Positions 716-64,000 of a DNA stretch of 64,000 nt are shown here, in pieces (positions within the stretch are counted from its first letter, which is position 1; every line of letters starts with the position of its first letter). The position numbers and the translations under genes were made by a program. The stretch is from Macrostomum lignano. Lineage: Eukaryota. The notes below the pieces were generated by a model. It saw only the letters and a program-made list of their open reading frames with translations, searched no databases and had not been told where the DNA came from. The stretch is taken from the NCBI GenBank assembly GCA_002269645.1, contig NIVC01001086.1, positions 25,030 through 89,029 of the forward strand, read 5' to 3'.

Positions 716-10819
<10,104 letters not shown>

Positions 10820-20474: not shown

Positions 20475-20789
20475 GGCCGCCTATGGGCCTGCGATTGGCT
20501 AGTAATGTTCCTTGTGCAGATTACGGGGTTTGAAATACGCAACGGCTTGTTCTTTCACTGTTGCATTCTTTGTGTGCAAAATAGTCGAAAATTGCACATT
20601 CGTTTCGACTTTTCAGTCTTCTGACCGTCTTCTGTGCAAGCAATCTATCGAATCTTAACAGACGGGATCCTGCTTGCTATTTGCTCGCTGTGTAAGCATC
20701 GAAACCAACTCCAGCCATGTGGCATGTCTCTTTGAATAGCTGGACACTAGTGTTAAAGAGGCGGTTCAAGGCTCAATGATCAAAGCGAG

Positions 20790-22974: not shown

Positions 22975-23455
22975 TGAGGAATGGGGAGGATGGGACTGAT
23001 GGTCTCTCACCTGAGGGCTGGGGATGATGGGACTGGTGTTCTCTCACCTGAGGACTGGCGAGGCTGGGACTGGTGTTCTCTCACCTGAGGACTGGCGAGG
23101 ATGGGACTGATGGTCTCTCACCTGAGGACTGGCGAGGATGGGACTGATGGTCTCTCACCTGAGGACTGGCGAGGATGGGACTGATGGTCTCTCACCTGAG
23201 GACTGGCGAGGATGGGACTGATGGTCCCTCACCTGAGGACTGGCGAGGATGGGACTGATGGTCTCTCACCTGAAGACTGGGGAGGCTGGGACTGGTGTTC
23301 TCTCACCTGAGGACTGGCGAGGATGGGACTGATAGTCTCTCACCTGAGGACTGGGGAGGATGGGACTGATAGTCTCTCACCTGAGGACTGGGGAGGATGG
23401 GACTGATGGTCTCTCACCCGAGGACTGGCGAGGATGAGACTGATGGTCTCTCACT
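22975..23455. repeat. 37-bp tandem repeat, ~12-13 units (ATGGGACTGATGGTCTCTCACCTGAGGACTGGCGAGG)
   Basis: Head-to-tail units with no spacers. Confidence 0.95.
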
Positions 23456-32600: not shown

Positions 32601-32927
32601 TGTTGTGCTGGACACGGGGTAGTCACGGAACAGGCTGATCTGCTTGTACGTGTGCATGGTGAGGCCGGTCAATGCGCCGAGCACCACCAGGCACCACAGC
32701 ATCCGTAACCATGGTATTTGCTGAGAAAAGAAGCGACCGAGTCCGTGAGCCGAAGTCTTGTGCGCGAATGTGTGCACATTGGCGTAGAGCAGCCGCCGGC
32801 GGTACCGGCTTTGGTAGGCGGCCTGCTGTTTCTCGTTCACGTCCACAGACTCTTGGGCTAACGCAGCCTCCAGACTCGAGTGGCCTGTCGAAGAACCAAT
32901 GCCTTTCTTGAACTGGCCGTCCTCCAT
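23691..32927 (-). CDS. DEG/ENaC (ASIC/FaNaC-like) amiloride-sensitive sodium channel subunit; 5 coding exons, ~867 aa
   Basis: Exons 32927-32064 (TSAHG motif, TM1, FPDVTFC, YGNCFSF, GLRVVVH), 27012-26858 (DTIPYPSEYG...), 25443-24873 (DCHC...CLNICNYTTY..SRWP), 24780-24531 (LRVYPKTL...YELVNLFSDLGGIM) and 24454-23691 (GLWIGVSMVTLCEF TM2 plus a long tail). GT-AG introns with phases 0/2/0/1 are consistent. Confidence 0.92.
28255..28585 (-). mobile_element. Decayed RTE-clade LINE 3' fragment in intron 1 of the channel gene
   Basis: The minus strand encodes AVVEVVLLYNAGTWTLT and RLAGHVMR...EPLHDLLLW...GPRRRGQ..KRY, typical of the RTE ORF C-terminus, with a stop and deletion between them. Confidence 0.75.
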
Positions 32928-35879: not shown

Positions 35880-38078
35880 ATGCAGCGCGAAGCAACAGGC
35901 GTTCTATTCAGCTACTTCAACAAGAGGTAAGCGATGCTGTTTGGCAGATATGCCGCGTGTTCGGCATGTTCGTTTATCACAGGCTCTGATCGGTCGGGAA
36001 CTGTTACTATAAACCGTGCAGTCAGGTCAGAACCAGTCGAAAGCACTAGAAAAATAACCTTAAAAATCGGCGTTTTCGCCGGGGTAGAAAAAACATTTCC
36101 GCCAGCGAAGTCTCCCAGGCTTGCGCGGCCGCCTACAAAGTTGGCCTATAAAGAGCAACTAGGGGGTTGATTCATATTTTCCTTTAAATGATCCACTTGA
36201 CCTTTTTCCAATTCTAGCCTGCTTGTTGGCTCTGGATTATAGCCTCGCAGGGGGAATAGCAGGGAGCAGTGGTCAGCGAAAGTGGGTCCGCTAAACCCAA
36301 ACTTTGATCAGGCAAAACCTGCCGACCAAAGACATGCTCCAGTAACCCCTGCTCGGCACTGCAGGTGAGTGTCGCAACCAGAATTCGGTACTTTAAATGG
36401 GAATGGTGGTCACGATTAAGAAAAAACATCTAACGATTGATCCGACCTAGCGAATCTACGAATGACATATGACAGTTTAGCGGAACATTTTTGTTCTGTT
36501 TCGATAATAGACCTTCAATGGAACTCTTGGCATGATAACTAGCCCGGTCCCCTTTCCAGCCAGTACCATGAGCGTTGCGTGCCAGCTCAGTCAACTCAGG
36601 CGGCGGCCGCGGCGGCTGAGAAGCCGCTGACCAGCGCCGAGCTGCGAAAAATGGACGCCGTCGGTCAGGACAAAGTCTGGCGGCAGTACGTGGAGAACGA
36701 GAGCCGGCACAACAAGCAGTGGTGAGAGTCCGTTTTAGGTGGCATTCACGCATCCTTGATTACCACAGCCTACATCATCCATATCACTATGATTTGCGAT
36801 TCCGCAAGGCTTTGTACAGCCTTGACTCTGAGCTTTGGTTTTACCTGAAGTTAGTTGGCCTAATATCAAGTCTTGGACGCACGTAGAGGTGTCCGAAAAT
36901 CCAATCACCCAGGTCACTCAACCATAGACGAGTATTGTGACCCAAGGGCGCAGCCAGGATTTTTTATTTTATTGGAGAGGCCAATTTAGTTGTCGGGGAA
37001 CTGCAAAAATTGGAAATAGAAATGCAAAACCTGCTTTAAAAGGCGCCAAATCAGCGGGTTTCCATACTTTTTTACCCCCCCCCCCTCTTGGCTACATGTA
37101 CGTCTCTGTTCCAAGCACACATGGAATCGAACTTTGGCCCACAAGATCGTGATAACCTACCCTTATTTCAAATCTAACCATCCATCAATTATTTTGTTCG
37201 AATTTCAGGGAGCAAAACTGGGGCTTCATGGCGGAGTTCGATCAAAAGGTAAGAAATCTCAAAGCATCTCAGATTCTCAATAGTTCAATGTTTTAGTTGC
37301 GAGAGTGAGGTTCTAGGAATTCACTTCTCTGAGCACGGAGTCCTGAGCAGTTTAGTCTCTAAGCATGGGGTCCTGAGCACGTAGTCTCTGAGCATGGGAT
37401 CTTGAGCATTTTAGTCTCTGAGCATGGGATCCTGAGCAGTTTAGTCCCTGAGCATGAAATCCTGAGCATTTTAGTCTCTGAGCACGGAGTCCTGAGCAGT
37501 TTAGTCTCTGAGCATGGGGTCCTGAGCACTTTAGTCTCTGAGCATGGGATCCTGAGCATTTTAGTCTCTAAGCATGGGATCCTGAGCAGTTTAGTCCCTG
37601 AGCATGGAATCCTGAGCATTTTAGTCTCTGAGCATGGGGTCCTGAGCATTTTAGTCTCTGAGCATGGGATCCTGAGCAGTTTAGTCCCTGAGCATGGAAT
37701 CCTGAGCATTTTGGTCTCTGAGCATGGGGTCCTGAGCATGTTAAATATAAAAGAATACATGTTGTGACTTTGGATGATATAAAAGTCAATATAAGTTGAG
37801 CGAGTCAATGGAATTTTTAAAAAGCTATTGTAAAAGGATAAAATTAGCACAATCAGACTTCGAATCCCATTAAACTCAACCCGCAGGGTAACAAGAAGGA
37901 GCGCAAGGTGCTTGCAGAGGAGTCCACCGTTTTCTCAACCAGCTTCCCGAACACGGACGCCGGGAACTACGGGCACCGGGTGAACACGGCCACTGGCCAG
38001 CGGTTGATGGAAATGCAGAGAAAATTTGACGCCGCCAACAAGAGGTCCAAGCCGGACAAGGATATTGTGTGCTACTGA
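35880..38078 (+). CDS. C2orf50: C2orf50-like (ciliary microtubule inner protein family) protein
   Basis: Exons 36560-36721 (DAVGQDKVWRQYVENE), 37209-37248 (WEQNWGFMAEFDQK) and 37887-38078 (GNKKERK..VFSTSFPNT..GHRVNT..GQRL) match the recalled C2orf50 pattern QD.LWR..E.E....W.QNW.F...YDP.GNKKE. Upstream exons 35880-35926 and 36251-36364 fit by phase but are less certain. Confidence 0.8.
37325..37740. repeat. 30-bp intronic minisatellite (~14 units, GAGCATGGGATCCTGAGCATTTTAGTCTCT)
   Basis: Direct reading; shows an internal 15-bp sub-periodicity. Confidence 0.93.
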
Positions 38079-38384: not shown

Positions 38385-39098
38385 GGTCTATGAGAATTTC
38401 CCGCAGGAAGTTTTCCCACCGTGGTTTTCCCGTGAGAGTTTTTCCCGCCGAGGTTTTCCCGCCGGATTTTTCCTGTCGGAATTTCAAGTTAAATCCAATC
38501 GGATTTGAAATATAGTCTAGTCTAGTTCTAATCTAGTCTGTTTTTAATCTAGTCTAGTTTATGTCTAGTCTAGTCTAGTCTAGGCTATTTCTAATCTAGT
38601 CCAGCATTGTCTATAGACTGGATTTGACATGAGATTCCGACTGTAAAAACCCCGCGGGAAAATCTCGGCGGGAAAACCTCGGCCGGAAAACCTCGGCGGG
38701 AAAATCTCGGCGGGAAAACCTCGGCGGGAAAACCTCGGCGGGAAAAGCTCCGCGGGAAAACCTCGGCGGGAAAACCTCGGCGGGAAAACCTCGGCGGGAA
38801 AACCTCGGCCGGAAAACCTCGGCGGGAAAACCTCGGCGGGAAAACCTCGGCGGGAAAACCTCGGCGGGAAAACCTCGGCGGGAAAATCTCGGCGGGAAAA
38901 CCTCGGCGGGAAAACCTCCGCGGGAAAATCTCGGCGTGAAAACCTCGGCGGGAAAAGCTCCGCGGGAAAACCTCGGCGGGAAAAGCTCCGCGGGAAAACC
39001 TCGGCGGGAAAATCTCGGCGGGAAAACCTCGGCGGGAAAACCTCGCTGCGGGAAAACCTCGCTACGGGAAAACTTCCTGCGGGAAAATCTCGCGCTCA
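38385..39098. mobile_element. Foldback/Mutator-like non-autonomous element with modular inverted arms and a 10-bp TSD
   Basis: The left arm (GAGAATTTCCCGCAGGAAGTTTTCCC..., few 14-bp units) is the reverse complement of the right arm (>25 GCGGGAAAACCTCG units ...GGGAAAACTTCCTGCGGGAAAATCTC). Inner arm segments also pair around a (TCTAG)n core. CTAAAAGAGG occurs at 38375-38384 and 39099-39108. Confidence 0.72.
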
Positions 39099-39526
39099 CT
39101 AAAAGAGGATGTAAATTCAAGATCTAGAATGGAGCTCGGACCAAAGTGACGGCAACCAATAACTTGGCAGACCAGGTGACTAAAACCGCCGTACATCTCA
39201 TTCAGGCCCCGTTCTTGTGTTCCCAGGATTTATCGTCAAAAAAGTACACGCGTACAGCATTGGCGCGCTTGTTATGTTGCTCAGGAGTCAGCGGAATGGG
39301 CAGAGCTGCCTCAGGGATGGTTGTGGGATCGGGACGATGTCGCTGAAGGTGTTGCGCTAAGGTGCCCCACAGCCCTCCTGCGAATGTTTATTTTTAGGGT
39401 CATCCAAAACGAAATAAATCATAAATTCATACTTAAAATTTCTTCTGAAAAGTCAACTATATACGAGATTCCATATATTTTTGCGCCTTTTCGATACAGC
39501 CTACCACAAGTAGCATAATGGGAAAG

Positions 39527-39850
39527 GGGGCCGTAGCCCAGCGGTAGCGCAGCTGCTCTGGTGTGCCAGCGACCCAGGCTCGATTCCAAGTGCAGTCACA
39601 TTAATTTTGGGGCTGAATTGGAATCTCGGCTTGGCTCTGCTCGTGCAATTAACGGCCTTGAGAGCCAACCTCCCGAGGCGCAGTAAAGTGTACATGCCTA
39701 ACGATAATATAAAGTTAGGGCCGCTGTACACTCCTGTGTGTGTGTGCCTGCGTACGTATCCGCGCGCTTGTATGCCTGCTCAGGGGAGTCGGTGGAATGG
39801 GCAGTAATGCCTCTCGCCGGTTGTGTGCCAATGTCGCTTAAAATGCGCAG
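39527..39850 (+). mobile_element. tRNA-derived SINE, copy B (most complete head)
   Basis: GGGGCCGTAGCCCAGCGGTAG (A-box-like) ... GGCTCGATTCC (B-box-like); the body is colinear with copy A. Confidence 0.78.
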
Positions 39851-39999
39851 TATGGAACAGGGGCAGTAATGGTATCTGGCCCCTCCACATTTTAAATGCA
39901 AAATGTAGGCTTTTTGCTTATTTCTTACTCTTATTTCTGGTTTTTGCTGCTTTTCATGAATGCATTTTGCTGCAGGACGACGAAACATATCGCGCCTAC

Positions 40000-45968: not shown

Positions 45969-48900
45969 CTAACTGGTCTGGAGGCTGGCGGCGGCCTGGG
46001 CAGAAAGTTGCATCAGGCACCTGGACAGGTACTCAATGGGATCGCTGGGTCGCTTGTTGGCCACCTCCGTCAGGGCTGTCGTCAGGATGTCGTCTGGAGT
46101 GCCGGCACAATTTGCGATCAATAATGATTTTGGGTGTTTGCAGGGTGCGTATGGCGTCGGGTTTTGGTATATATGAATATTAATACCAGCATAAGAAAAC
46201 ATGTATTTATTTTGATAGCTAGAGCATCTCGGCTAGCATGGACATCCTCAGAACAAAGTTTATTTAAAAATTTTCTCACCATTGCTGACGTTAAACTTCA
46301 TAAACTTCAATTGTTAAGCGAGCTACGCTATCGGTATAAGGCTTTCAAGTCAAGGATTTTAAAATACAGTCAAATTAATTAGTTTTTGCCTACAAATGTC
46401 CCTACGAGCTATGCATTTGGTTCGATTGTGCAGGTTGAAGTTCTTGTATAGCTAGCTCTGATATACGACGTACATGTGCAGTATAAGACAAAATGCAAAT
46501 AGGACTCACTGAGTCGCCGTAGGTAGTCGGCATCGGTTGCGGTGGCGGCTTCACCGTCCGCAAGCTTGGCCGTGCCTACTGACTGGTCAGCAGTCAGCCG
46601 GGCCAGCTTGTCCTTTGCCGACGCGGATCCTGGCGGGATGCGGTACAGCTGGACCGGGTGGTAGCGCAGCAGGATGGCCATGTACTTGGCCGACGGCACC
46701 AGCAGCATGAAGGGCTCAGTCTCGAACAGATAATTGAACACCTGCTGGCCGTCCGCTACCCGATAGGCCTGTAAAATATTTTTGTGCAGCTGAAGGCTAG
46801 GCTGAACGCGAATCATTTGGCAATACAACTTTTACCATGTCTATACGATGAGGGCCAACCCCCAAGGCACCCAGAGTGTACAGGCCTGACGATTAGAAAG
46901 TCTGGGTCGCTGTACACCCTGAGTGTGTACGAGTGCGTGCCTGTGTACAGTACTGGCGCGCTTGTGTGCGCTCAGGTAAGCGGAATGGGCAGTAGAATTG
47001 CCTCACCGCTGCTTGTAGGACGATGTCGCCGAAGGCTTTGCGCAAGGGTGCCCGCAATCCTCCAGCGAATATTTATTTATTTTAATGTAGAGCAGACTTA
47101 CGGTTGAGGTTTCTTAATGTAAATCATTTCAATAGCATATTATTACGATTGGCTTTCCAAATCGATAACCCGGATCCAAATTCGATTGCTTCAGCGAAAA
47201 AAACTCAGCGTACCTGCACAGTTTTTGGTGGGTCAACAAACTCGTCCAGGCCGGAATTGTCCCCGGATGTGATTTTGATCCTGCGAGCTGGCTTGTACAG
47301 CTTGCCCACCAGCAGCTCGCTGTCCGGACTCAGCACCATCTCATACAGGATGATGGATTGGTCCGGCTTCAGATCTTTGACAAGCAGGCCCGTTTCAATG
47401 TTGAAGATCTTCAACCGATAGGTGACGCAGTGCATACCATCGGGCAGAAGATAGAGCACCCCGGCGTCGAATGTTCGACTAAGCGACAGAGTTCTGTAGC
47501 TGGACGCATCGACCACCATGAGGCGTCCCGGCCAGGCCATGCAGTTGCGCCGGAAGGCCTCGCGGTAAGTGTTCACTGAGCCGCTCATGAGCTGCAGCAC
47601 CAGCTGTCCCGGCCTGCCAGGTCGCATATGAAGCAGCCGCGGCCTGCAGGTGTGCGAGCTCTCGATGACGACGCTGATGGACAAGTCGACGTCCAGCTCG
47701 TGGAGCAGCGACTCCGCCGAAATGTCCTCACCCAGGTAGGACTCGAGTTCGCGCAGGATCGCACCGTTCGACATGTGAAAAGCAATTGAAGCGCGGCAGC
47801 GGGCTGTCAGTGTTTCGATGAACTGCTGAAGTATTGGCAAGTACTGATGAACCTTTTCTTTGCCGCTATTCACCAGGTACTGACACACCTGCCTGGCCTC
47901 TGCGAAAACCTGCGCAATAAAATACTTGCGAATGTAATCATGGAACTTAAAAAACGATGGTTCGGACTACCTTGTAGTTTCACAGAACTTTTACACCTAT
48001 TTGTAGCAGTTTGCCACTGATCTAAAGTTGGATCGAAGCTCTTAAACAGGGGCACCTAAGACCATATACGGACGCCCCTAAATTTGCTGCATTGCAAAAA
48101 AATGCACTTTTCTCTCTTACCTGCAATGCGACCTCGCGCCGCGCCTGGCCAACAAACTCATCTCCAACAGTTGGTACAGGCCACGTTTTAATCCGCTGGA
48201 CCTTCCGACCTGGCAGATCCAGGCAGAGTAGATAGTCCGACAGGTCAGGTGACTCGGTTGACCGTCCGTCAAGCACGTCAGAAAGGCGGGGTGCCTGCAA
48301 ATTGCCGGGGCCTCGAACCAGAAGGTGCATTCGCGGTCCGTCTATTGCGGCGCTGACCGAAGGCGGTGTGGCCGGTAGCCAAGGCTGGTCACAGCCGTGC
48401 ATGAAGTAGCCGACAGGGAAGGGGCGCACAGCAGGATGCGAGACAATGGCAAGGTGCAAGTCAGGATTCCCTAACAGATCCCTCAGGGTGCGCATTGAGC
48501 GACTGCGATCCTTTTCAGGTGGCAACTGCAGCGACTCCGGCACCTCAAAGCTGACGGGCGCCGTCGGTTGGGAAGCCAGGCGCATGACAAAAAGAAGATA
48601 GCGCGGAAGCAGTCGCAAAAACAGGCCGTGCTGCTGCAGATCCGGGAAGTTGCACAGCTGGTTGAGCTTAGAGTTCCAGGCCTCCTTAAATCGCGACATT
48701 GCGGCTAAAACTTCGGCATCATATCCATCAACTTTGCCGTCCGGAAGAGGCTCGCGGAGCTTGGCATCTCTAGCGCCTGTGCCACCAAGGTCGGTGCAGT
48801 ACATAACGCCTCCTTGAAGCCGCTTGTCGAAGTAGCCACTCCACAATGCCTGCTCGCGTGGGTCGAAAACAAAATCTGCTCGCCTCTCCTCTTTCTTTGT

Positions 48901-51900
48901 CACGAAATTGCTTTCGAATTCGGACAGCTGGCCGGCCAGCTTGTTGAGGTTGAAAACCTTCAGCTGGACAGTAGACGCGTTGGCGCCGGCCTCTGGCATT
49001 GTGTTAATCACTAGATAGTCCGTGCCGTATGGCTGTCCCAGCATGATGTAGTCCGAAACGCCTCGCAAAGCCAGCAGAAAGCTGCCATCCTTGGCAGACC
49101 AGACGTTAAACGTAAAGTAGGCCTTGGCCTTCACCAGCAGCAGCGAGCCATCGTCGCTAATGTGCACCGGGCAATTCAGCACCGTGTGAATCTCTGCGTT
49201 TGTATCCAGTTCGTAAGACTTGTCCAGCACGCGATGATAAGCGACTGGAACCGTCTGTGGAAAATTATAATTTTATATGTTTTCAAATTTGTAAATACGC
49301 TTCTCAGTTAGCAATTAAACTCACCCGCGCAGCCTCCGGATACCACAAGAATCCAACACAGTCACCGAGCGGCTCCGACAGCATGACAACAGCAACAGAA
49401 GCCGTCCTCGATAGGCTAGTCATGAACGGCTTGTTGACGGCCGCCTCCAACTCCAGCTCGTGTCGAGCTCGACGCTCAACCTTGGGATCCAGATCAAATA
49501 GGTAGAAAGTGAACAGCGCACCTCCTGGACTCAAGGTCACCAAGAAGAGGCACTCTCCATCGTCAAAGAAACTGGTGTTCTCGCTGGTCAGCTCGTGGGC
49601 CGCCAGACCTTGCCCGGAGCAATCTAGTTCGGTTTCTTCGAATGTGTCCAGGTCCACCACCCTTGGCGTCAGTGGTTCGTCCGAAGTTTCTTCGCCCTCC
49701 GAGATGCGGTGGCCTATGTAGAACAGGCACCGATCATTGATGAGGCTTTGCCCCAGCTGCATCGGCCAGGAGCGGAACAGGAAGTGGCGAAGCGGCTCCG
49801 ATTTTAGCAAGCAATACGTGATTGGCATGGTGGCGTAGAAAGTCTTTGCAAAGATCATGTGCCCCTCGGTGGCTTCCAAGCAGCCGCTGCCCGACTTGGC
49901 GAAGTACTGCAGCGGCAGCGAATCAGGCAGGCTAGGCATGAGAACCTTCCAGGCACCGGTGCGCATGTTTGCCCGCAACAGCTGGAACTGCCCGGGCGCT
50001 ACCTCCTCGACTGTGCAGAAGCAGCCGCTTGTGGGCAGAACAGCCACGAATCGAATGTGCGATGCTGCAGGCCGCTCGGAAATCACAGTCTTTAGCTCGG
50101 ACCCCTCATGGTCGTACCAAGTGACGGTGTTGTTTTGCAGAGACACTGCGTATATCTTGCCATCTTCACACAGGTTGCCAATGGACAGGCGTACCTTCAG
50201 AATGAATTAAGTTGACAAGTTACATAGCCAGCGAGGTTTTCCCTCAAATGATATCTACGTGCGCCTTAAGATAGTGACGGCCTGACTTACCTGCACAGTG
50301 CAGTGCGTGTATCCACTACCAGTGTCCAGGCAATTATTAACAGGCAGTAGCAGGGGACTGTCCTTCTTGCACGCCTCAAGCAGGTCGCTAATGCGTCTGG
50401 ATCTGGCAGCGAATGGCTGCAAGCGGCCGCAGAGGTCCACAGGCAAACTCAGCGGACTGTGGCTCAGGCTGTACGCTGAGATGCGCAACGCGTTGTAGAT
50501 CCGAGTGAGGTCGAGCTCATTCTGTTCACTGCCGCGCTCCTTCTTCTTGAGGTCGAAAAACAGATGCAAGTCCATTAGCAGCTGATGGCGCCGGCTGGAG
50601 GCCAACTTGGACTGCAGATGATCCAGGTTAAAGGCAACGTGCTCGAGAAAGTCCACAACTCGGCCACTTCTGATGAAGTGCCTCGGTAGCTGGTTGATGC
50701 GGCGCAGGTTGTAGTACGGCTTGTCACTCTCGACTCGAAGAACAAACGGCTGCGCTGGGACCTGCCTATCTGCGGCCATTGGCACGGGTAGGCCCTGTAG
50801 TAAAGGAAATAGTTCGTCTTTACTAATTCTGTCTCACTATAAATAAACACAAAAATATTTTTGAGAATGTTTCCTACTCTGGTGATACTACGAGTAGTAC
50901 TTTCGTACGGGCGTATTCTAAGTTATTTCTAGTCTAGTTATAGCTAAAATAAAGCTTTTGCATTACAAGTGAAACAAAGTTTAACATCGAAAAAGCTGAA
51001 AATTAACGTGGATTGACACAGCGCTCACATCTCGCTCCAATTTGGCCTTGACCCTTTCCGGACATTCAAACGGCTTCTCCCGACCGGCGGCCCACTCTCC
51101 AAAAAAGTAGTCGGCCATTCGCGAATGAATAATCCTGTTGTGCTCTGGATCGCTGAGGTAGAGCTTTTGAGCCACCTCCCAGAATTGTCTGTGGTACCAG
51201 AATAGCACAGTGACACCGTCGGCTTCGCGCTCAACCAGGTAGTCGTCGATCTGTTGTCGAATGCGGGTCCAAGCCAACGGTGGCACGCGAATGAACGGCG
51301 GCAAGTGGTGCGTGAACACCTCTCGCAGGACGTCGTCATCTAGCGACAGGAGGTCCTCAATCTCTGCCTCGCTCAGACCGGTTCGGGATGCTGTCACGTA
51401 GGATAGCGCGTTTCGTACAAGCACCTCGCCGTAACGAGTGCCAAGTTGGCTAAGCAACAGCCGAATCGCTCCTTCAACAGTCGGTTCCAGCATTATTTTG
51501 TCTAGCGGGGTGTACGAACTCCATCGTCGCGCCTGACGGAACACCAGGCCAATGTAGATAGGCAAAGAGCAGCTTGCAAATGCCGTTCGAAGCGCGTCCC
51601 ACTGAGGCTCCGTAAGACGGCGCTTTGACTTTTCCAGCCGCGCCCTGGTGATTTCCTCGCACAATGCTGGCTCCAGCGGTGGAACATCCATTACTCGGTC
51701 CGGCAGCAGCTGAAGAAAATTCTCCCTAATACCGTGCAGAGTTGGCAGGCAGCTTAGTAGCATCTTGCAGCCTGGAGGCAGCTCGGACCTGAGCCAAGTG
51801 AGCTGGTAGGCGTAGTCGGAAGCATCAAGTTGATCGAGGGAGTCCAGCACAATGATAACACGGCGCGATTTTCCCAGCTGTTGCAGAAAATCGTAAAACG

Positions 51901-54139
51901 TGCTGACCAGCTCTTGGAAGCTGTCCATTCCTGCAACTTGCTGTGCCTCTGTAGAGCCAAGGAACACTGCTAACTGCTGACACAATTGCTTCACAGTCTG
52001 ACGAATGCTGCTTGTGGAGGGACTGGTTCCCAAGAAGCGCAGCAATAGTAGAGCCGACGGCTGGTTATCCGGCGGTAGCCAAGAGCGAGAACTCTTGGCA
52101 GCCTTGGCCATGATGGAGGTCTTGCCGCAGCCGGAGCTGCCGCACAGCAGCAGCGGCTGCCTGGAGTCGCCCGTTATGTAGTCGCGCAGCTGGTCAAGAA
52201 ACTCCTTCCTGCCCTGAAAGTTGGTCACGTAGCGAACGCAGTGATGCGCGTGCTGCAAAACCTCGGCGTACAACGGGTCCGCTTGCAGCTCCGACCTGCG
52301 CTGTCTGAATGTGTCTACGAGACGCCGGACCTGCGGGTGGGTTTTGGTAGGCTTTCATTGTTTATGGGATTAGAATGCCACAAGTTTATATTACTGGATA
52401 AGTAGATCAAACCCTCTTCTAACCGTTGAATCGTCAGCATATTTTCTCGGAATCCCCTATGGGAGCTATAGAGATCGAGATAGAGATAGAGAAATAGAGA
52501 TCGGTAGAGAAATTTGATTCAGCAACTAATCAAAGCCAAGTGTTTTACAGTCAGTACGATTTTGACTCATAACCATACACAAGCAAGGAATCGACTCATA
52601 CCTGCATCTCAAAGTCCTTAACTACGCTGTCCAGGTAATCAGCATGAACCTCGGGGCTGATACCTTTTGGAGGCTGCCATGTCAAAGAGTATTCCGTGAC
52701 GCCTTTAGGCAGCAGGTCCCGCAGACGCGATCGCAGTCCGTCCAACGCCTCAGCTGCCTCGGGATCGGCGAATCTTTGCGCCGCTTTGTCGCCCTCGTCG
52801 AGACGCTGCTGAATGTCAGTTATGTCGCGGAAGATGGCAAAGGCAAATGGCTTCAGCTCAGGATGGGCGTCCAGCACGCCCATTTGAATCTCTTGGTGCG
52901 TAATTGACGTACAGAACCGGATAGCCCTGGCCGACGTCATTGAGCCTTTTGCAACCGCCGCATTTGCAGCGACCTCCAGCGCCTTCTGCAGCGCGGGACC
53001 ATCGTGCGGCCAATCGGTCTGTTCGGCCTCGGACTCCAGTGGGCGCAGATTGTACACCGGCGGCCGGCCGTTCTCATCGCGCAAGTACCATCGATGCAGC
53101 AGGGCCAAGTCATCCGGCCTGTCGGACATGGCAGCCTCGAGTATGCCGGCCTCCTCCTCGGTGAGCCGGTTGGGCGCCTCTTTTCCGCCGTAGCGATGGC
53201 TCAGGATTGTCTATGGGGATCCCGGGGGTGTATTTTGCATCTGTTGCGCTAGTGCTAGCGCTAATCTAGACCATAGCTATTCCTTAAATTGGTCGCTCGG
53301 CCATTAGAGGGCAAAAAATCGAAAATAAAAACTGTTGCGTTCGCAGTTAGGAAAATCATGAAATATCTGAGTGGACGGCAGGTACGAGCTATTAGACGTT
53401 TAAATTCGAACTCAACTTCGAGTACAAAGGCTGCATGGTTCGCACTTAGGAATTTCAGATGTATTGATACAACCTCGAAAATATGGAGCTATGCTAATCC
53501 TCACCATAAAATGCGGCCCACTAGAGAGGCGCTGACAGTTGAGAATCTCGTTGAAGCACATCTCCGAGGCCTTGTGATCGGAGGACGCCGCGTCCTGGAT
53601 GCCCCAGCGCATGTCCACGATCTGAAAGAATCCGTGGTCAAATTATTCTGCTTTGACTGTTTCAATAGGGAAAAAATAAATTCTTATGATTTCAATTACG
53701 CTTTTACCTGGAATTCTAGGCCATACTGATCACGGTAGAACTCCTTCATCTTGGAGTAAACAGTCTTCATCAGCGCGTTCCGTTCAACCGCCATGTCTGA
53801 AGAAAAGTTAAGAATGCGCTTTGGTCTTGGGTGCTCAACAGCTTCTGAATTCTGCCTGTGTAGATACATGATTACCCTCTCTACTCTGCCATTGTAGATT
53901 TAATCACCTGAGAAAGTAGAGCTAATGAAAATTCTAATCGATTTTGTGTCCTTCTTTGGCAGCTCATCCAAGTTGCCGCACAGCAAGCGCCGATAGAGAT
54001 TCTCCCTGCTCTGCTCCTCGCTGATGAACATGGGCGCCATGACCGCCGCGGCTTTAAATCGGCGAGCCGGATTGCCATTAGGAGAACGCAGTTGAGGCGC
54101 CTTGGGGTTCGTTTTTGGAGGTCTCGCTAACCGCTTCAT
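45969..54139 (-). CDS. NWD1/NWD2-type NACHT (STAND) NTPase with a DUF4062-like N-terminus, a divergent beta-propeller region and a C-terminal Dpy-30 motif; 11 exons, ~1978 aa
   Basis: Exons 54139-53908 (RIFISSTFS), 53796-53708 (DM..ERN.LM), 53621-53505 (DMRWGI...GPHF), 53210-52602, 52330-51029 (Walker A GSSGCGKT, Walker B IIVLDSLDQL, YHRQFWEVA), 50794-50291 (YNLRRINQLP), 50194-49325, 49254-48121, 47909-47214, 46768-46510 and 46093-45969. All GT-AG with consistent phases; 5937 nt in total. Confidence 0.9.
46852..47092 (+). mobile_element. SINE copy C (5'-truncated) in intron 9 of the NACHT gene
   Basis: GGGCCAACCCCCAAGGCAC...GTGTACAGGCCTGACGAT...GCGCGCTTGTG..GCTCAGG..GAATGGGCAG...AGGGTGCCCGCA, ending in a (TATT)n tail; homologous to copies A and B. 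Confidence 0.7.
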
Positions 54140-57100
54140 AATAGGTTTGGCAGTAAATAATTGTTATAATTATATCAACGATTAGGTGATGATTTCTCAG
54201 GCACGAATGTAACAAAATTATTGAAGAAAAAGAAAGTTTTCAAATAAGTTTCCACATGATTTGCGGAATTTGTCATCTTTTAAGTAAAAAAGTAGAACTT
54301 CTCTTGGCTGCAAATATTTCTACATTAAAGATAAATTTTCAACTTAATTCAATAAATATAAATAAAACCTAATGTACAGAAAAATGCTATTTAGAAAATA
54401 ACCTAGGTCCAAAGTTAAGCAAAGTCTAGTAGGAGTAATACTGAGTCTTATCTTGTCTGAAATGATTTTTAATGTGCTATCTTGGTTAGGAAATATTTCA
54501 ATAATTCATAAAAAATTACCTAAATGTATCGAAAAGAAAAAAACAGAAAAAAATTTGTAATTTTATAGTGACAATGCAATTTTTAGTATCTATACAAAAA
54601 TGCATTTATCGATTGTCTTTTAATTTCTTTCTTTTTCACTTACACAATTATTCAAAGCAGTGAAAAATTCTAATGTAAAGAAAATTGCAGACTAAATTCA
54701 ATAAAATTATTTCTCTCTAAGCCATTAAACCTATTGTGGAGATGGGAATGGAAATGGAGATGCTTGATTCATTTTAAAATACGGCATAAATGCATATCGC
54801 GTGATATAGGTCTCGAACTATCGAATTAAAAAACTCGAATAGAAGCGAAATCAAGTTTGCTTCTAAAGGTAGACGCTTAGTTTGTATTCAGAATAATTTT
54901 AGTGTAATCCTTAAATAGGTTTATATTTTTAACTTAATTTTACAACGAGCAGAACAATAATATTTTGCTGCCAGGTGCAAACTGTTAAGGTTATTTTTGC
55001 TTTAATTGATAGAAAGAATTTCCGACATACGAAATAAAAACTGTCTGAACTTAAATGTCCATATACTGATTTCTATGGATATAGAATCACGTACTTTATT
55101 CAAATGCTTTTCTTACCAAATTAATTATATAATTCCTTACGATTTTTCAGGACTGTTGCTCACAGTGATGGGTTTCGACCTTCCGGCCCCCTTGTGGGGA
55201 AGCCTTCGCGGGCCTCAGGTCTCAGAAATAAATCAATTAGACACCATGCGCCCAAAACGGCACTTTCACGCATGTTTCACGCGACACGCATGGACATACA
55301 TGCGCTACGCGTGTTCCTGCAATTCACGTCACGGGAACATGCCAGTTCACGTGTGCTTGTGGTAAAAGGTATGCACGTGATTTCATGGACAAATCACGCG
55401 TTTTCACATTAGAGAATCAGAAATTTGTCAACTATGCTACTTCTTTTTATGCTACTTAAAGTAGCATAGATAAGCAGCAGCAAGGGATCGCATCCTAAAT
55501 CAAGTATAATGAATATCTTTCTTAAACTGTTAAACTTCTAATAGAAATAATGCATCTCTTACTATACCATAAATATTTTGCAGCCAATCGTTTCTCTCGC
55601 CGCTCAATTAACATTGAATAAAAAATGAAGATATAAAAATCAAGTAAACTCATTTGAAGCCACATTGAATCAAGAACTGTGTGCTTTCGAGAGAATACAC
55701 TATAGAAGGAATGCGACTAAAATTTAGTCACAAGTAATTGTTTAACTACAATTTATGATTTAAAAAGCAACAAAAACCATTTTTTTGAGATAAAGCGATG
55801 CAATCTGCATCCACATAAACTTCTGACGCAGCTTACTTCCATCTTTGTTAAAGTATTTATAAAGCAAAGCGGTGTAATCAAAACGCGGAAGATTTTTTAA
55901 ATGTTTAGCGCCTGGACTCTTGTCGAACGTGCATTGCATGGGCTATAGTTGAAAAGACAGGCGACGAATAAAATAGTCAGTCATCGTGGTGCCACCCAAT
56001 GATGTAAGCACTAATAGTCTATCACGTGGCGTATCAATATATATCGATTGCCTATCACCTTACTAACTGCGCTCCATAACTACTACTACCACTGTAATTT
56101 TGATTATTTTAATAACCAGATTATGTCTGCAGAAGAACCCAATAGAACAAAAGTTAGGCCTATATATTTTTTGTTCTTGGTATTTTCGTCACCCTTTGTA
56201 TGCCAGTATGCTATTAAATTTACTTTTAATTGGGCTTATAGCTAGATATTATGAATGCAATCAGTTCCTGTTTTATGTATACATTAGCTAAGTGCATTTA
56301 TTTTTTGCTATATAAAATGCAAAGGATTTGCTACTTAACTCCTAACTCTCAGATGAAAATTTACAAAAACAAGACAGAGGACAATTATTAAGATTTCTTA
56401 TTTGTTTTATTATTACAATATTGCATTCCTTTTATTTATATATTTGGCACTTAATTTATTATTAATATTACCTTTATTACCAAAAAACTGTATATTATAT
56501 TGAATTCCTAAAGAACTCCCTTTCGCTCTACACTTGTTCCTTTGTCTTATCCTACCTAACTACCTTTTATGTTTTAATACTGTTTAAATTCCATATTCCA
56601 AAAACTCAAATTATAGCTATTTTGGATTCTACTTGACTTAATAGACTATATAGTAGGCCTAGCAATAGTTAAGTCAACAAGGTGTCTTTGGCCCAGAAAA
56701 ATTCTGGCATGAAAATGGGTGAAGAAAAATTTTAGCATATAATTTCCATCTGTACACATAGGAAAAATATATATAAAAAATTGAGCATTCTGGTTTATTC
56801 TATTAGGTATTAGGTCATATAGCAAAATGTTTACACACACTTTGTCATAAGCATTTTTTGTATAGACATAAAGAATTAACACAAGCTTACTAATGCTGAT
56901 GCCCAAAGTCAAGTCATTAGCAAACTGGCAGCAAAGTATTTAATGAATTTTAAAGAAGTTATTCACTGCTAAGCTTGGACACTAGCAAGAGGCAAAGGAA
57001 AATTGTTTTTTTAGTTATAAAATATAGCTATATATTTTTATATACTAACCATAGAGCCATAAACCCCCTGCTTCTTCCTTAATACTCTATAGTATAATAA

Positions 57101-57214
57101 AAAATCTCCTTAATAAAAATATAACCTTTATACCTATCTCTTTTCATATATTGGTATTATGACAAACAGGTCTATAAATTTACTGAAACATGGAATAGAG
57201 TCATAGACCAAAAC

Positions 57215-57465
57215 AGGCCTAAGGGCTTATAGTGTGATTGACACCCATGAGGGGCAAGCCCCAAGGCACAGAGAATATATAGTGTCTGACAATGAGAAAG
57301 TCAGAGCAGATGTATACCTCTGTGTGACCATTGCCTATGTATATATCCATGTGCCTGTGTATGCTCAGAAGTAAGTAGAATGGGCATAATTGCCTCCCCA
57401 CTGGTTATAGGTTTATAAAAGCATTGCACCAGGGTGCCCATAGCCCTTCTACAGATAACTAAACT
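57215..57465 (+). mobile_element. SINE copy D, hypermutated (C>T/G>A)
   Basis: CCCCAAGGCACAG...CTGACAAT.AGAAAGTC...TATCCATGTGCCTGTGTATGCTCAG...GAATGGGCA..ATTGCCTC...CCAGGGTGCCCATAGCCC aligns with copies A and C but has lost all CpGs. Confidence 0.72.
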
Positions 57466-58999
57466 AATTAATGGCATTTCATTGAACATGGTCAATATGT
57501 AAATATAGTAGCTAGTTGATCTATCTTTTTCTTTTGGAAAGATTTAGTCTTCTTTTTTAATTATTTTATTTTGTATTCTTCAACTTCTAGTGCTTGATAG
57601 CTTTGTCTAGGGTTCTCTTCTGAACCCTACAAACTTCTTAGGATATCTTTTTACTTTCAGTGTTAGTTTATTTTGTCCATTTAGGTAAATGCATAGACCA
57701 ATGACAAGCCTTTATTTGTCTGAATTTCTTACCTTGTTTAGCATTTTGTAGTCTAAGTAGAATCTATTCCATAATAAGTTTATTAACCTACTCCCTCTCT
57801 AGCTATATCAATCAGAGCATTGCTATTGGCTGGCCTATTGCTACTTATGCTTTTCTTTTGTTAACAGTTTTGGCTAGTTGCGGCTGCTATGGAAGACAAA
57901 CGCTGTTAGTTAAGTGTGATGGCACAACAACTGTGATGAACAATCATCTGAGACAGCATGTGACTTACTTTTTAAAAACCAAGCAGTACATAGAAAAGCT
58001 AGAACCATGAGTTTGTTAATTTCTTATATTTAAAAATATTTGGTTTCAAGTCAGCTATGTTAAATATTCAAATCAAATCCATTTGAAATTTCATATTTGT
58101 ACCATCCCTAGACTAACCACTAAGCTACAACCTACCACAAAGTGAGATCTTACTTATAAAACAGCTGACTGGATAATTTATATAATTTTAAATTAATTAA
58201 ATTCCAATGTGAAACCAATGATATTAGTACCAATTCATTTTCTAAACTATTCCATTTTTGGAAATTATGTATATTGTTATATTTCATTGACTTCAATTTG
58301 GCCTACCAAATTTATAATGCTATTTAAATATTTTATATTACTGCAATATAGAGCTTTGCTTTTCTTTTTTAAGAACTTTTGGTTAAATCTACCCACAATG
58401 ATATTGTAGCTATAGTTAAAAGTCATTTTTATGTTTGGTGTTATGTTTAAGTAATGTTATGTTATGTTATGTTTAGTTATGTTTAGGTAAATATGTTTGC
58501 ATTATAAAATAATGGCATTTATTAGCAAAGCCAAGGACATAATTGTATCTGTTGTATTTTACATTTGCTTGCACAAGGTTGTAGGCCTAATCAAAACTTA
58601 GTTATCCAGTTGCTATTTTTTGTATCAAAAATTCAAATGAAACCTAAGCTTGTTATTAAGGGCCAATGGCACAGTGGTCATTACATTATTAAGTTTGTTC
58701 TATGGAGTCAAGTTTAATTCCACATTTTGACTTAATTAATTTAAGACAAAAGTATATGATCTGTGGTTCAGCAGTCATGGTTAATTGAGTTTAACTATAA
58801 TTTTGTTTTAGTGGCATAATGACATTAGTTTCAGAATAGATTTAAGCTAAATGAACAAAATAACTTAAGCTTCCAAAGCTATTGATACCAGCTCTTTGCA
58901 CCTTCATTTTTTCAAACCACCTTAGCTTGGTTCGCTAATCCTGTTGTATAGTAGTAACTTGTCATTCTCCAATTTATTGTAATATTTTTAACTGGAAAC

Positions 59000-59706
59000 A
59001 CTCCACCAATTGGTATTCTGCATTTTTTTAATTTCAGCATAACTGGGCGACTTTTAATGGAATCTGATCAAGACTCAATTGATACTGTCCCGAGTCATGA
59101 TGCCCTCTCTGTAAAGACTCCTGTCAGTACCCTTTCGCAAGCGCCGCAATTAAGCCTGAGTCAGCGAATTCTGACGCCGTCATTGGCTACTGTAGGGTTG
59201 CCAAACGATGCCACATGAGTTCAATGGGCACTCATCTCAGAACGCAGACTGGAGTGAAGATTTTATTACATACTCGACTCCTAAGCGAGATGTTGCCGCT
59301 CTTTACTATTATTAGCAGTTACGGTCTGGAACATCCGACAAAAAGTTAAATCAGCTGTTACGAATGGAATCATTCTTCAATTTACGATCGTTCTTTAAAG
59401 TCGAACAGTATTCACAACTTCCGCGAACCATCAACGGCTATCATTAAAACTGCCAAGACTATGCGCCCCACCATTACACGACCAACATCACAATGTCCAC
59501 ATCTGGAGCGAATGTACATGCAGCTGTGTACTGTGACGAACAAATGCCCCACGTTTAAGTATCTCCTGGTCCATCCTACGGAGGCAAACTACAGGACTAT
59601 TGATTTAAACGACATCACTTATCGATGCTCGTTTATGCCAGCTTCTTCTGCGACCCCGTATTTACTTCATGTGTGCCCTCTTATTGAGTTTGATGAAGTT
59701 AGTTAA
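59000..59706 (+). pseudogene. Possible decayed DNA-transposase remnant (EnSpm/CACTA-like C-terminal motif)
   Basis: Frameshifted NGIILQ / YDRSLKSNS near 59360-59420 resembles the NG..F.S..Y.R..K.NS motif of animal EnSpm transposases. Many stops; weak evidence. Confidence 0.3.
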
Positions 59707-60459: not shown

Positions 60460-60620
60460 TACAACATGTTCACGCGAGAGAACTTCACGGGGAGACGCGT
60501 TTTCCCGTCGTGTGTGCACGCATGTCTTCCCATGCGACATGGAGGCACGCGGCGTGTGCCTGCATGTCGCATGGGAAGACACTCGTGGCCATGCCGGGAT
60601 TCCCGCGTGAATCATATGGG
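60460..60620. repeat. Long imperfect palindrome with a perfect 19-bp inner stem
   Basis: TGTCTTCCCATGCGACATG (60523-60541) pairs with CATGTCGCATGGGAAGACA (60563-60581). The outer TTCACGCG/CGCGTGAA also pair. Confidence 0.8.
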
Positions 60621-61967: not shown

Positions 61968-63171
61968 ACCAGGAGAGCCTATCAGTTCCCACAGGGTCGT
62001 AAAAAGATGACAGGTGCGGTCATAAATCAATCAAAATCGCAACAAAATGATTTATGACTTTTTGCGTAGGATTGACAGAAATTAATGAAAAAATATACAT
62101 TAGAAAGCTCTTATTAAATAGAAAGTGAAGATAATGAAGAGAAATCACTAATCGCTAATCCCAAGGCACTTTTAGGGGTAAAACGCATAGCTGTCAAAGC
62201 TGTCACACGCTTGAGTGAACACGAACAATAGGCTCTGACCTCATAAATCTTGATGGCCTGTCAAAATGATGAGAAAAAAGCTCTCTCCTTCGCATCCTCT
62301 CAGACCATCTGGCGCCCGCCTCAACACTGTGTGAGGCGCAGGTGGCTGTCAGACCAGCTTCGAAAGCGATGATTTATGACCCAAAAAGCTGCGCCTATGT
62401 TATTATGACTACTAGTATGACCAGACATTATAGATTCTATGAAAATTCGCAGAAAAAGAATAAAAATGCCCTTAGCCTGCTGTCAGTAGGCTAGTAAGTT
62501 TAGAGCTCATGTGCTAGCGCGGGATTTGGAAAAAAGTGCGTCCTCATCAACAGCAAAAAATTGTCCAGCACTTTTACTGCATGCATACACTCATACATCT
62601 AAGGTACATCCTTGTTAATTACTTTAATACTGTTGCATGTCCAGGCAGTATGTTCATGCTTTTTCATGTTATTACACGTACATGTGATTAAAAAGTTGTA
62701 TACAATTGACCAAGCAATTCGCCAATTATTATTGTTTTACAGTTTACCTTTTGGTTAGCAAAAATTTCTTTAATGGACATGGAATAATAAGTTAATTACA
62801 GTGTGGAGAGAGGTAGTTTAGTTTTCCTTTATAAATGCACCTTGTCTATATTTAATATGAGTTACTTCATTTGAAACTGTAATACATGTCTTGTCAAATT
62901 AATGTCAAACATTGTGAAGACATGTCAAACATGTCTTCACATGTAGATGAAGCTTTTTAGGCACGCATCCTGGCCCTTAGACCGATATATGTTAAGGGAA
63001 ACAACAGAAAATTATCATTGCGTCTTCATCGAATTTATTAGAATGAATAGATAAGCGTATATGTACATTGTGCATGCCGTTTTGCAAAACAAATTATTGC
63101 ATTTTACTAATGCGTGAAATCTAAATTAACCCGTCGACCCGCATGCACTAGCAGCTATTCTAGACCAAACA

Positions 63172-63492
63172 ACAGGTACATGTACGCGCGTATTACGCGC
63201 ATAAAACGCGCGTTTTCGTTCGCGTTTTACGCGCATTTTTTATTAATTCTGTACGCGCGTAAGCGAACGCACGAAATACGTGCCTTTGGTAACACAGAAA
63301 ATACGCAGTAATAACGCAATGCTGCAGACGGGTACAGGAACAGGACTAACATACATGTATTATAGGTTTCGCGGATTCGTTTATGCTTTGAGCAAAGTAT
63401 CGCGTCTAAAACGCACTAAATATGCTCGTATAATAACGCGATATGTGTTTGACATTACGCTCTAAATATGCGCGTTTTACGCGCGTACCTGT
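63172..63492. mobile_element. CpG-rich MITE-like element with ACGCGCGT-based terminal and subterminal inverted repeats
   Basis: The left end ACAGGTAC..GTACGCGCGTATTACGCGCAT matches the reverse complement of the right end ATGCGCGTTTTACGCGCGTACCTGT. Confidence 0.55.
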
Positions 63493-63852
63493 TGCTTGGG
63501 GAGGCTCAAGACCCATTGTTGCTCTGTAGAAATGCTGCTGATAACTAACTGTGCATACGTGCGAGCTGCTGTAGAGGCCCCCACCGAACCTCACAATTAA
63601 ATAGCTAGTAGATATCATAGTGCGAGGACAGCAGAGCTTTCTCTGCCTCTATATTTATATGCGCGTTTTACGCGCGTACCTGTTGCTTGGGGAGGCTCAA
63701 GACCCATTATTGCTCTGTAGAAATGCTGCTGATAACTAACTGTGCATACGTGCGAGCTGCTGTAGAGGCCCCCCACCCGAACCTCACAATTAAATAGCTA
63801 GTAGATATCATAGTGCGAGGACAGCAGAGCTTTCTCTGCCTCTATATTTATA
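63466..63852. repeat. Tandem duplication of ~191 bp (two near-identical copies)
   Basis: Copies start at 63466 and 63657 (ATATGCGCGTTTTACGCGCGTACCTGTTGC...CTCTATATTTATA). Confidence 0.92.
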
Positions 63853-64000
63853 CATACCTTCGAATTGTTCTTGTAAGACTTGTGCCAATCTATTTTGACT
63901 GGCTACGGGACAGCAATTAGCATTCACAATGTAACTGCTTAGTCTCTTTTGCATCACAGATAGATAGAGTTTATATAGCTAAGAAACTGTTTATTCCGCC

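Follow-up and report, generated by a model that had tools for sequence, protein, structure and literature searches.

The 64,000-nucleotide stretch of contig NIVC01001086.1 of Macrostomum lignano that was analysed in this study (hereafter the window) contains a CpG desert, a non-coding segment of 2860 bp that lies at 56188-59047 and has lost nearly all of its CpG dinucleotides. The loss is local and directional, affects both DNA strands equally and depends on the position of the DNA and not on its being repeated; it recurs at other M. lignano loci and is associated with the 5' ends of genes. On balance, we consider it probable that the desert is a small island in which cytosines were densely methylated in the germline and that it was subsequently eroded by deamination of 5-methylcytosine (5mC), a reading to which the mutational footprint points. 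The evidence comes from the composition of the segment, from a transposon copy that is embedded in it and from similar segments elsewhere in the genome.

Extent and composition of the CpG desert

Measured from CG to CG, the desert has a GC content of 30.6% and contains four CGs (at 56524, 57881, 57901 and 58933), while 66.6 are expected from its base composition, which gives an observed/expected ratio (o/e) of 0.06. At the o/e of 0.86 that is typical of the window, about 57 CGs would be expected (Poisson P=6e-20), and the lowest CG count found in 2000 shuffles of the desert was 41. The reverse dinucleotide GpC is undepleted, with 104 sites and an o/e of 1.56. An earlier note on this DNA had described a block at 56280-58920 with about three CGs, common GC dinucleotides and an abrupt return of CG at its end. 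The counts confirm this description, the sole CGs of that interval being those at 56524, 57881 and 57901, and the bounds given were essentially right, except that the left edge lies approximately 90 bp further to the left. Both edges are sharp: CG density shifts within about 100 bp at each, to approximately 24 per 500 bp from 59048 on and approximately 20 per 500 bp to the left of 56070.

The GC content alone fails to explain the desert: CpG o/e is 1.06 in the left flank, which is just as AT-rich, and 0.99 in the AT-rich right flank. The GC content of the whole window is 46%, and that of the M. lignano genome is approximately 46%. All other long CG-free stretches of the window are microsatellites. 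Inside the desert, CG is lost in all NCG contexts, and the composition is symmetric between the strands (181 TG versus 173 CA).

Copy D of a SINE-like family as an internal record

A copy of a short interspersed element (SINE)-like family, referred to as copy D, is found inside the desert. The presence of this copy, claimed in the earlier note, was borne out by a hidden Markov model (HMM) whose training set was limited to copies A, B and C and with which nhmmer recovers copy D at E=7.8e-26 over approximately 220 bp; the BLAST match of copy D to three other copies spans approximately 170 bp. The name SINE is reasonable because copy B possesses the A box (TAGCCCAGCGG, 39534-39544) and the B box (GGCTCGATTCC, 39577-39587) of an RNA polymerase III (pol III) promoter, 43 nt apart. 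No tRNA of Rfam matched the head of copy B at E<=1, and ARAGORN found only the tRNA-Thr at 11906. Copies C, D, E and F are all without the head. The family is also found in other M. lignano contigs, and 12 copies were collected from 339 kb: copy D, five others from the window and six from the M. lignano loci described below. The 11 copies other than D are located in DNA of normal CpG content and keep 6-16 CGs each, with o/e of 0.64-0.93 and GC of 0.54-0.60, so that copy D does not represent an AT-rich subfamily. The flanks of copy D, by comparison, have a CpG o/e of 0.07.

The comparison of 35 nucleotides of copies D and A on which the earlier note had relied was reproduced, with 11 differences of which ten are C>T or G>A, and with the six CpGs of copy A replaced by TG, TA, CA, TG, TG and TA. 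Copy D was also scored against a leave-one-out consensus of the 12 copies, with five older copies pooled for comparison. Of the 201 sites scored in copy D, 32 show C>T/G>A, 7 show T>C/A>G and 17 show a transversion, against 47, 40 and 83, respectively, of 654 sites in the five older copies, and the C>T:T>C ratios differ (p=0.003). The proposal of a local and directional C>T process is upheld by this comparison. Copy D is younger than the five older copies, as judged from transversions (8.5 versus 12.7%) and T>C changes (3.5 versus 6.1%), although its C>T load is double theirs (15.9 versus 7.2%), so age alone cannot account for its state. None of its 15 consensus CpGs is retained, while the older copies retain 22 of 47 (p=5e-4).

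The excess of C>T changes in copy D depends on the following base. It is found at CpG (14/30 versus 18/96 in the older copies, 2.5-fold, p=0.004) and at CpA (9/30 versus 10/102, 3.1-fold, p=0.014), as the earlier note would predict, and not at CpT (1/20 versus 8/71, 0.4-fold, not significant); the difference at CpC (6/29 versus 9/81, 1.9-fold) is also not significant. With a stricter consensus of six copies, the CpG excess remains (p=7e-4) and the CpA excess has p=0.08, because of which the CpA component of the decay is regarded as probable but not certain. The strands are balanced (C>T 15, G>A 17), and the bases 5' of the mutated cytosines give TC 4, CC 5, AC 7 and GC 10. A deaminase, another candidate of the earlier note, is unlikely if of the single-strand type, because the changes are strand-symmetric and show no preference for TpC, CpC or WRC.

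Recurrence of deserts in M. lignano and their shared composition

Further M. lignano DNA was sampled at 11 loci (275 kb of assembly GCA_002269645.1), which were reached via cluster members of M. lignano gypsy proteins. When a strict desert is defined as at least 800 bp long, nine further deserts are found (Table 1), with 28-37% GC and CpG o/e of 0.00-0.06, amounting to 12.2 kb or 4.4% of this small and biased sample. Among 251 complex 500-bp windows, CpG o/e is bimodal: the main mode lies at 0.8-1.0, and a second, separate one (10/251) at 0-0.2. The deserts are a class of recurrent CpG-free segments of 0.8-2.9 kb that make up approximately 4% of the sampled M. lignano DNA. No further decayed SINE copy was found when the other deserts were searched. 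A second transposon relic, at 1300-2700 (minus strand) of locus L003, shows CpG decay of the same kind: it is a decayed reverse-transcriptase fragment of a non-long terminal repeat (non-LTR) element (RVT_1, E=1.5e-8) with in-frame stops, a CpG o/e of 0.21 and CA/TG odds of 1.31, at a GC of 0.40-0.50 that is above that of the strict deserts.

The symmetrised dinucleotide odds in the pooled M. lignano deserts and in the window block are, respectively, 0.02 and 0.02 for CG, 1.59 and 1.56 for GC, 0.98 and 0.99 for TA, 1.18 and 1.17 for CA, 1.30 and 1.28 for CC, 0.77 and 0.72 for GA, and 1.11 and 1.14 for AG. In 98 AT-rich control windows outside deserts, the odds are 0.98 for CG, 0.89 for TA, 1.06 for CA and 0.97 for CC, and simulated decay of CG to TG/CA in these controls predicts 0.81 for TA, 1.39 for CA, 1.06 for CC and 1.39 for GpC. 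The CA/TG odds of the deserts (1.17-1.18) are above those of the controls and below those of the simulated decay, and TpA is above prediction. This TpA surplus and CA/TG shortfall fit an onward flux from TG/CA to TA, in agreement with the CpA>TpA signal of copy D. An exotic dinucleotide signature, to which a GA/TC value of 0.72 might be ascribed, was rejected, as the AT-rich M. lignano control attributes it mostly to CpG loss and arithmetic compensation; the residual after this control consists of the surpluses of CC/GG, GpC and TpA and the CA/TG shortfall. A k-mer classifier that was trained on the M. lignano deserts with CG-containing words excluded ranks the left half of the window's desert top among non-repeat windows, while the right half is not cleanly split from the AT-rich flanks.

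Location of the deserts beside gene 5' ends

In the window, the desert lies between the 5' end of a minus-strand gene for a NACHT-domain protein and a splice-acceptor-like tract that ends at 59037, and it terminates at TAATTTCAG. The desert of locus L001 is likewise bounded by TAATTAATTTCAG, just before an annotated 5' end. Beyond the tract of the window follows a short ATG-initiated open reading frame (ORF), a putative first coding exon, and the DNA downstream of 59057 has a normal CpG content of 8-14 CGs per 250 bp. By analogy with the M. lignano loci, the window block would flank, on its 5' side, a putative plus-strand gene with its start at approximately 59057.

The 5' ends of 14 annotated host genes fall within the M. 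lignano loci. A complex desert is found directly upstream of four of these genes, against a rate of 0.026 per gene for randomly placed positions in those loci (P=4e-4). These four genes encode a receptor kinase, a PQ-loop protein, a kinase and a cold-shock-domain protein. The region upstream of a WD40/RING gene (L007 2691-3690) is a CG-free tandem repeat (compression ratio 0.12, GC 0.53) and was not counted; simple repeats such as this one mimic deserts, and genome-wide scans will need to be filtered for them. In the desert-bearing M. lignano genes, the gene bodies are lower in CpG o/e (0.39-0.69) and contain stretches that lack CG.

Annotated 5' ends in M. lignano that do not begin with ATG sit just after AG acceptors. 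This is in keeping with the spliced-leader trans-splicing that is described for M. lignano, in which up to 2 kb of DNA upstream of the start is enough for tissue-specific expression (PMC5730564). The AG acceptors before annotated 5' ends suggest trans-spliced genes whose outrons or promoters are CpG-free, and the deserts may be either promoter DNA or transcribed outrons or 5' introns.

A palindromic motif of the deserts

The deserts are enriched in the palindrome TAGGCCTA and its half-sites. TAGGCC/GGCCTA occurs 3.78 times per kb in the M. lignano deserts and 2.57 times per kb in the window block, compared with 0.71 in the AT-rich controls (P=6e-19 and 0.004, respectively), and the whole palindrome occurs 1.15, 0.73 and 0.12 times per kb in the same three sets, an enrichment of approximately 6-10 fold. 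The enrichment is spread across most of the deserts. GGCC is the sole 4-bp palindrome composed entirely of G and C that remains in the deserts, and GATC is depleted there (0.37 versus 0.67). Conversion of GATC to GGCC by T>C changes at TpC was considered as a source of the GGCC excess and is unsupported, as only one of 15 such sites changed in copy D. When the literature was searched for TAGGCCTA, nothing but primers and unrelated bacterial sites turned up.

Searches for other identities of the desert

The sequence of the desert yielded no Pfam match in six frames, no Rfam family (the best hit being a sub-threshold mir-964 with E=0.47) and no similarity to phages or plasmids. No terminal inverted repeats (TIRs), target site duplications (TSDs), or terminal or internal repeats were found, and comparison with the rest of the window and with the M. 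lignano loci revealed no homology except for the SINE. A discrete transposon was consequently rejected as an identity of the desert, given the lack of TIRs, TSDs, internal repeats, coding remnants and homology other than that of the SINE. A non-coding RNA, a nuclear mitochondrial insertion, a contaminant and a vector were also rejected, in view of the missing Rfam family and phage or plasmid match.

Origin of the deserts

In the methylation reading, a DNMT1/DNMT3 system would lay dense germline methylation on small segments, the remainder of the genome being almost unmethylated. The 5mC would then deaminate spontaneously, and mCpG would be converted to TpG or CpA, and mCpA to TpA. Cytosines inside such a segment would turn into T far faster than those elsewhere, on both strands equally, most strongly at CpG and probably also at CpA. 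Any insertion in the segment, including a SINE, would lose all of its CpGs, and SINE copies elsewhere would keep theirs. The action in the germline and the non-CG methylation behind the CpA component are inferred parts of this scheme, and the methylation of the deserts may be current or past.

This reading is favoured because the footprint is position-dependent, strand-symmetric and GpC-sparing, is stronger at CpG and CpA than at CpC and CpT, and occurs in a genus that is reported to retain DNMT1 and DNMT3. DNMT3 enzymes prefer CG and CA over CC and CT, which is the order seen in copy D. By reasoning rather than computation, an o/e of 0.02-0.06 should be attainable for fully methylated neutral DNA, where o/e would equal the quotient of approximately 1.2 and the relative rate of CpG transitions. 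M. lignano is reported to retain both DNMT1 and DNMT3 (reviewed in PMC9246332, PMC11292947) and to be low in overall 5mC (PMC9246332, PMC11292947, PMC10658182). This combination implies that any methylation in M. lignano is focal.

Several points weigh against the methylation reading. Methylation is deduced as the cause from the mutation footprint alone. The loci were all picked around gypsy insertions, so that the 4.4% and the estimate of gene association come from a small and biased sample. Other invertebrates methylate gene bodies, not non-coding DNA upstream of genes, and the pattern of gene-body methylation is not seen here: no coding signal was detected in the block, which is situated upstream of the ATG, and the DNA downstream of 59057 has normal CpG. 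The CpA result consists of nine events in one copy and has only p=0.08 under the stricter six-copy consensus. Deamination also leaves unexplained the CC/GG odds of 1.28-1.30 (1.06 predicted), the GpC odds of 1.56-1.59 (1.39 predicted) and the 4-5 fold enrichment of TAGGCC/GGCCTA.

Among the alternatives, a regional C>T bias that is independent of methylation survives best, and we still regard it as unlikely. AT-rich DNA that is open, for instance in promoters or outrons, would melt or become single-stranded more often, its cytosines would deaminate faster in more than one context, and the effect would reinforce itself near gene starts. Such a bias would suit the uniformly low GC of the deserts (approximately 30%), their adjoining of gene 5' ends and the C>T excess of copy D beyond CpG (3.1-fold at CpA, 1.9-fold at CpC). 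It is at odds with the o/e of 1.06 in a flank of 32.8% GC and of 0.98 in the 98 AT-rich control windows, as well as with the undepleted GpC and the CpT that is not raised. Deamination linked to transcription should moreover be strand-asymmetric, while TG and CA (181/173) in the desert and C>T and G>A (15/17) in copy D are balanced, and a CpG loss so specific and near-complete is hard to reach without 5mC.

The sharpness of the boundaries (approximately 100 bp), such as is found at joins of DNA of different ages, and the lack of transposon homology in the block besides the SINE would also be in keeping with a relic, in which the block is older DNA or dates from an era of heavy methylation in the lineage, and the CpG-normal DNA around it consists of more recent insertions. 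Age alone is rejected by copy D, which is younger than five copies that still hold 47% of their CpGs. The version with a past era of methylation needs all CpG-normal non-coding surroundings to be younger still, and age does not predict the association with gene 5' ends; we find a relic improbable in either form.

Selection could in principle keep the composition of the deserts if a promoter or regulatory function needed the absence of CpG, for instance so that CpG-binding factors are kept away, together with sites of the TAGGCCTA type. The motif densities (2.6-3.8 TAGGCC/GGCCTA per kb versus 0.71, and the approximately 6-10 fold enrichment of the palindrome) are what such constraint would leave, and the deserts lie directly upstream of genes; in M. 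lignano, upstream regions of up to 2 kb are enough for tissue-specific expression (PMC5730564). It is implausible, by comparison, that selection purged every CpG over 1-3 kb, including all 15 of a passenger SINE, and copy D records a mutational direction, with C>T far above T>C, and not the loss of particular sites. Constraint is accordingly given as little credence as a relic.

The earlier note had called the desert RIP-like, after the repeat-induced point mutation (RIP) of fungi, a genome defence that mutates repeats, and a defence of this or of a deaminase kind is very improbable here. There are resemblances: the block is AT-rich and sharply bounded, it holds a transposon relic with directional C>T changes at CpG and CpA, a preference also reported for RIP in some Aspergilli, and its TpA/ApT ratio of 1.07 exceeds the usual threshold of 0.89. 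RIP is diagnosed when a TpA/ApT ratio above 0.89 is accompanied by (CpA+TpG)/(ApC+GpT) below 1.03 and a composite index above 0, while the latter two values are 1.28 and -0.21 for this block. Eleven of the 12 copies of the same repeat are unmutated, so that location and not repetition is the trigger, and the label RIP-like is misplaced for a process that depends on position. Most of the block is not detectably repetitive and the deserts associate with genes; copy D shows neither strand coordination nor a TpC, CpC or WRC preference; and, to our knowledge, RID-type enzymes are known from fungi only.

Foreign DNA, a contaminant or an assembly chimera of another native composition, which the earlier note had considered, can practically be set aside: although the block differs from the rest of the window by approximately 2-3 standard deviations in four dinucleotides, it holds a member of a Macrostomum SINE family, has no phage or plasmid match and no coding remnants, and resembles blocks at nine places in M. 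lignano contigs beside host genes.

The methylation reading can be taken further, in a form that we advance tentatively and regard as rather doubtful. The sparse methylation of Macrostomum flatworms may be concentrated in discrete islands of 1-3 kb directly upstream of some genes, where it would be dense at CG and CA and possibly targeted or marked by TAGGCCTA, and where it would erase every CpG and inactivate any inserted transposon.

Comparison with known systems

The earlier note knew of no established animal equivalent, which is wrong for the CpG part of the process, as the decay of CpG through 5mC in methylated domains is a well-documented phenomenon of animals. The mosaic genomes of invertebrates such as Ciona, sea urchin, honeybee and Nematostella share with M. 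lignano a CpG-specific depletion with intact GpC, a bimodal CpG o/e and the retention of DNMT1 and DNMT3, and their depletion is credited to germline 5mC deamination, as is proposed here. The depleted parts of those genomes are gene bodies, whose o/e is typically 0.3-0.6, whereas the deserts are non-coding segments of 0.8-2.9 kb that lie just upstream of gene starts and have an o/e of 0-0.06, in a genome whose methylation is reported to be low. In vertebrates, the CpGs of SINEs (e.g., Alu) decay several times faster than other sites, mainly to TpG/CpA, and germline-methylated promoters turn CpG-poor, both of which resemble the deserts. The vertebrate genome is depleted as a whole and unmethylated islands are the exception, while the reverse is found here, with small CpG-free islands on the promoter side in a CpG-normal genome.

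Fungal RIP and the AT-isochores of Neurospora and Leptosphaeria also present sharp AT-rich blocks, transposon relics, C>T changes including CpA>TpA and a raised TpA/ApT ratio. RIP is triggered by duplication, strikes all copies, depletes CpA/TpG and relies on the RID and DIM-2 enzymes, whereas a single one of 12 copies is affected here, the (CpA+TpG)/(ApC+GpT) index is 1.28 and the blocks adjoin genes. In the basidiomycetes Microbotryum and Cryptococcus, transposons undergo a regional hypermutation at CpG or TCG that is linked to methylation and to a DNA methyltransferase. Like the process described here, it targets CpG and is confined to certain genomic regions; it differs in being fungal, centred on transposons or centromeres and, in Microbotryum, TCG-specific, while all NCG contexts are lost here in regions next to genes. 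AID/APOBEC enzymes leave clustered C>T or G>A changes in retroelement copies, a pattern to which copy D bears a likeness. Those changes are strand-coordinated and fall in TpC, CpC or WRC contexts, neither of which is true of copy D (15 C>T versus 17 G>A), and 2.6 kb of surrounding non-repeat DNA is affected here too. The chemistry appears to be that of the familiar methylation-driven CpG decay of animals, while the location, the completeness, the probable CpA component and the palindrome are unlike the invertebrate mosaics described. The genome papers of M. lignano and of M. cliftonense/M. hystrix contain no mention of CpG or methylation.

Other features of the window

The coordinates of the desert, the SINE-like copies, the motif sites and the M. 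lignano deserts and genes are compiled in Table 1. Other features of the window include an apparently intact Ty3/gypsy element at 13331-19455 (+), which has a 778-aa gag-protease ORF with a cold-shock domain and a 1259-aa ORF for reverse transcriptase, RNaseH and integrase. The closest relatives of its pol are M. lignano elements with 57-61% identity and the same cold-shock gag; the gag ORF of the window had no record of itself in the protein search. The gene at 47205-54139 (-), from whose 5' end the desert is approached, encodes a NACHT/NWD1-like STAND NTPase in multiple, large exons; its best database relatives have at most 41% identity, and no Macrostomum orthologue was among the database matches returned. 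An exon of an ASC/DEG-ENaC amiloride-sensitive sodium channel is found at 32055-32927 (-) (Pfam E=8e-31) and had no match in a large protein database. A tRNA-Thr(TGT) gene at 11906-11978 (+) is the sole Rfam or ARAGORN match in the window.

Long tandem arrays are unusually many (1284-3308, 5584-7642, 8824-9286, 20783-22153, 22968-23454, 37326-37743 and 38646-39092). They comprise 2 kb of (ACAG)n, 2 kb of (TCCATCCATC)n and satellites of 19, 37, 30, 14 and 48 bp. Approximately 40 bp separate the end of SINE copy A from the (TCCATCCATC)n array that comes after it, copies E and B are located beyond the 14-bp array, and (ACAG)n also occurs beside the desert of locus L001. The end of the window, 62501-64000, has a CpG o/e of 1.4-1.5, GA/TC of 0.65-0.70 and CC/GG of 0.62-0.64, and for CpG and CC/GG it stands at the other end of the scale from the desert; a 196-bp tandem duplication (63466-63659 and 63657-63852, 98% identical) lies within it. 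A near-perfect palindrome of 71 nt (60517-60587, 87% self-complementary) is located in the CpG-normal right flank of the desert.

Table 1. Positions of the desert, SINE-like copies and motif sites in the window, and of deserts, motifs and genes at other M. lignano loci
Feature	Contig or locus	Positions	Strand	Remarks
CpG desert	window	56188-59047	.	non-coding, 30.6% GC, CpG o/e 0.06, GpC o/e 1.56
Left flank, comparator	window	54150-56187	.	non-coding, 32.8% GC, CpG o/e 1.06
Splice-acceptor-like tract TTTTTTTAATTTCAG	window	59023-59037	+	right desert edge; CG density resumes 11 nt on
ATG-initiated ORF, putative first coding exon	window	59057-59218	+	53 aa, no known domain; 19 nt after acceptor
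SINE-like copy A	window	5217-5544	+	15 CG; normal-CpG surroundings
SINE-like copy B	window	39530-39860	+	16 CG; pol III A box and B box
SINE-like copy C	window	46846-47062	+	body only; 15 CG; best BLAST match to D, 70% over 173 bp
SINE-like copy D	window	57229-57448	+	body only, no head; 0 CG, GC 0.45; inside desert
SINE-like copy E, partial	window	39250-39377	+	9 CG
TAGGCCTA palindrome	window	56155-56162	.	at left edge of desert
TAGGCCTA palindrome	window	56654-56661	.	in desert
TAGGCCTA palindrome	window	58582-58589	.	in desert
Half-sites GGCCTA	window	57216, 57832, 58300		in desert
TAGGCCTA and halves	L001	8132-8141, 8674-8683		
TAGGCCTA and halves	L004	4890-4960		
TAGGCCTA and halves	L005	22207-23104		
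Desert	NIVC01001866.1	71631-73224		
Desert	NIVC01001499.1	374196-375187		
Deserts	NIVC01002123.1	87906-88743, 91558-92455, 92867-94217		
Deserts	NIVC01000452.1	32386-33792, 37222-38077		
Desert	NIVC01000180.1	131477-133098		
Desert	NIVC01000713.1	268506-271127		
Gene with upstream desert	L001	7194	-	desert at 7063-8656
Gene with upstream desert	L005	24817	+	desert at 22207-24866
Gene with upstream desert	L006	3116	-	desert at 3135-3990
Gene with upstream desert	L007	5861	-	desert at 5857-7478

Implications

The deserts coincide with the upstream promoters of 1-2.5 kb that are used in M. lignano transgenesis, and their composition and TAGGCCTA sites may matter for the design of constructs. If the deserts are unmethylated, a CpG- and CpA-specific regional mutation bias will remain unexplained. 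If they are methylated, they would provide a map of methylation sites from sequence only, and the placement of methylation in non-coding DNA on the 5' side of genes would be unusual for an invertebrate and would bear on the evolution of promoter methylation. Were the more extended proposal of discrete upstream islands true, these islands would be the inverse of vertebrate CpG islands, a case of promoter-side methylation in an invertebrate, and would form a mutational sink for mobile elements that is triggered by position and not by repetition. As copy D illustrates, the place where a transposon copy lies can by itself determine whether mutation destroys it.

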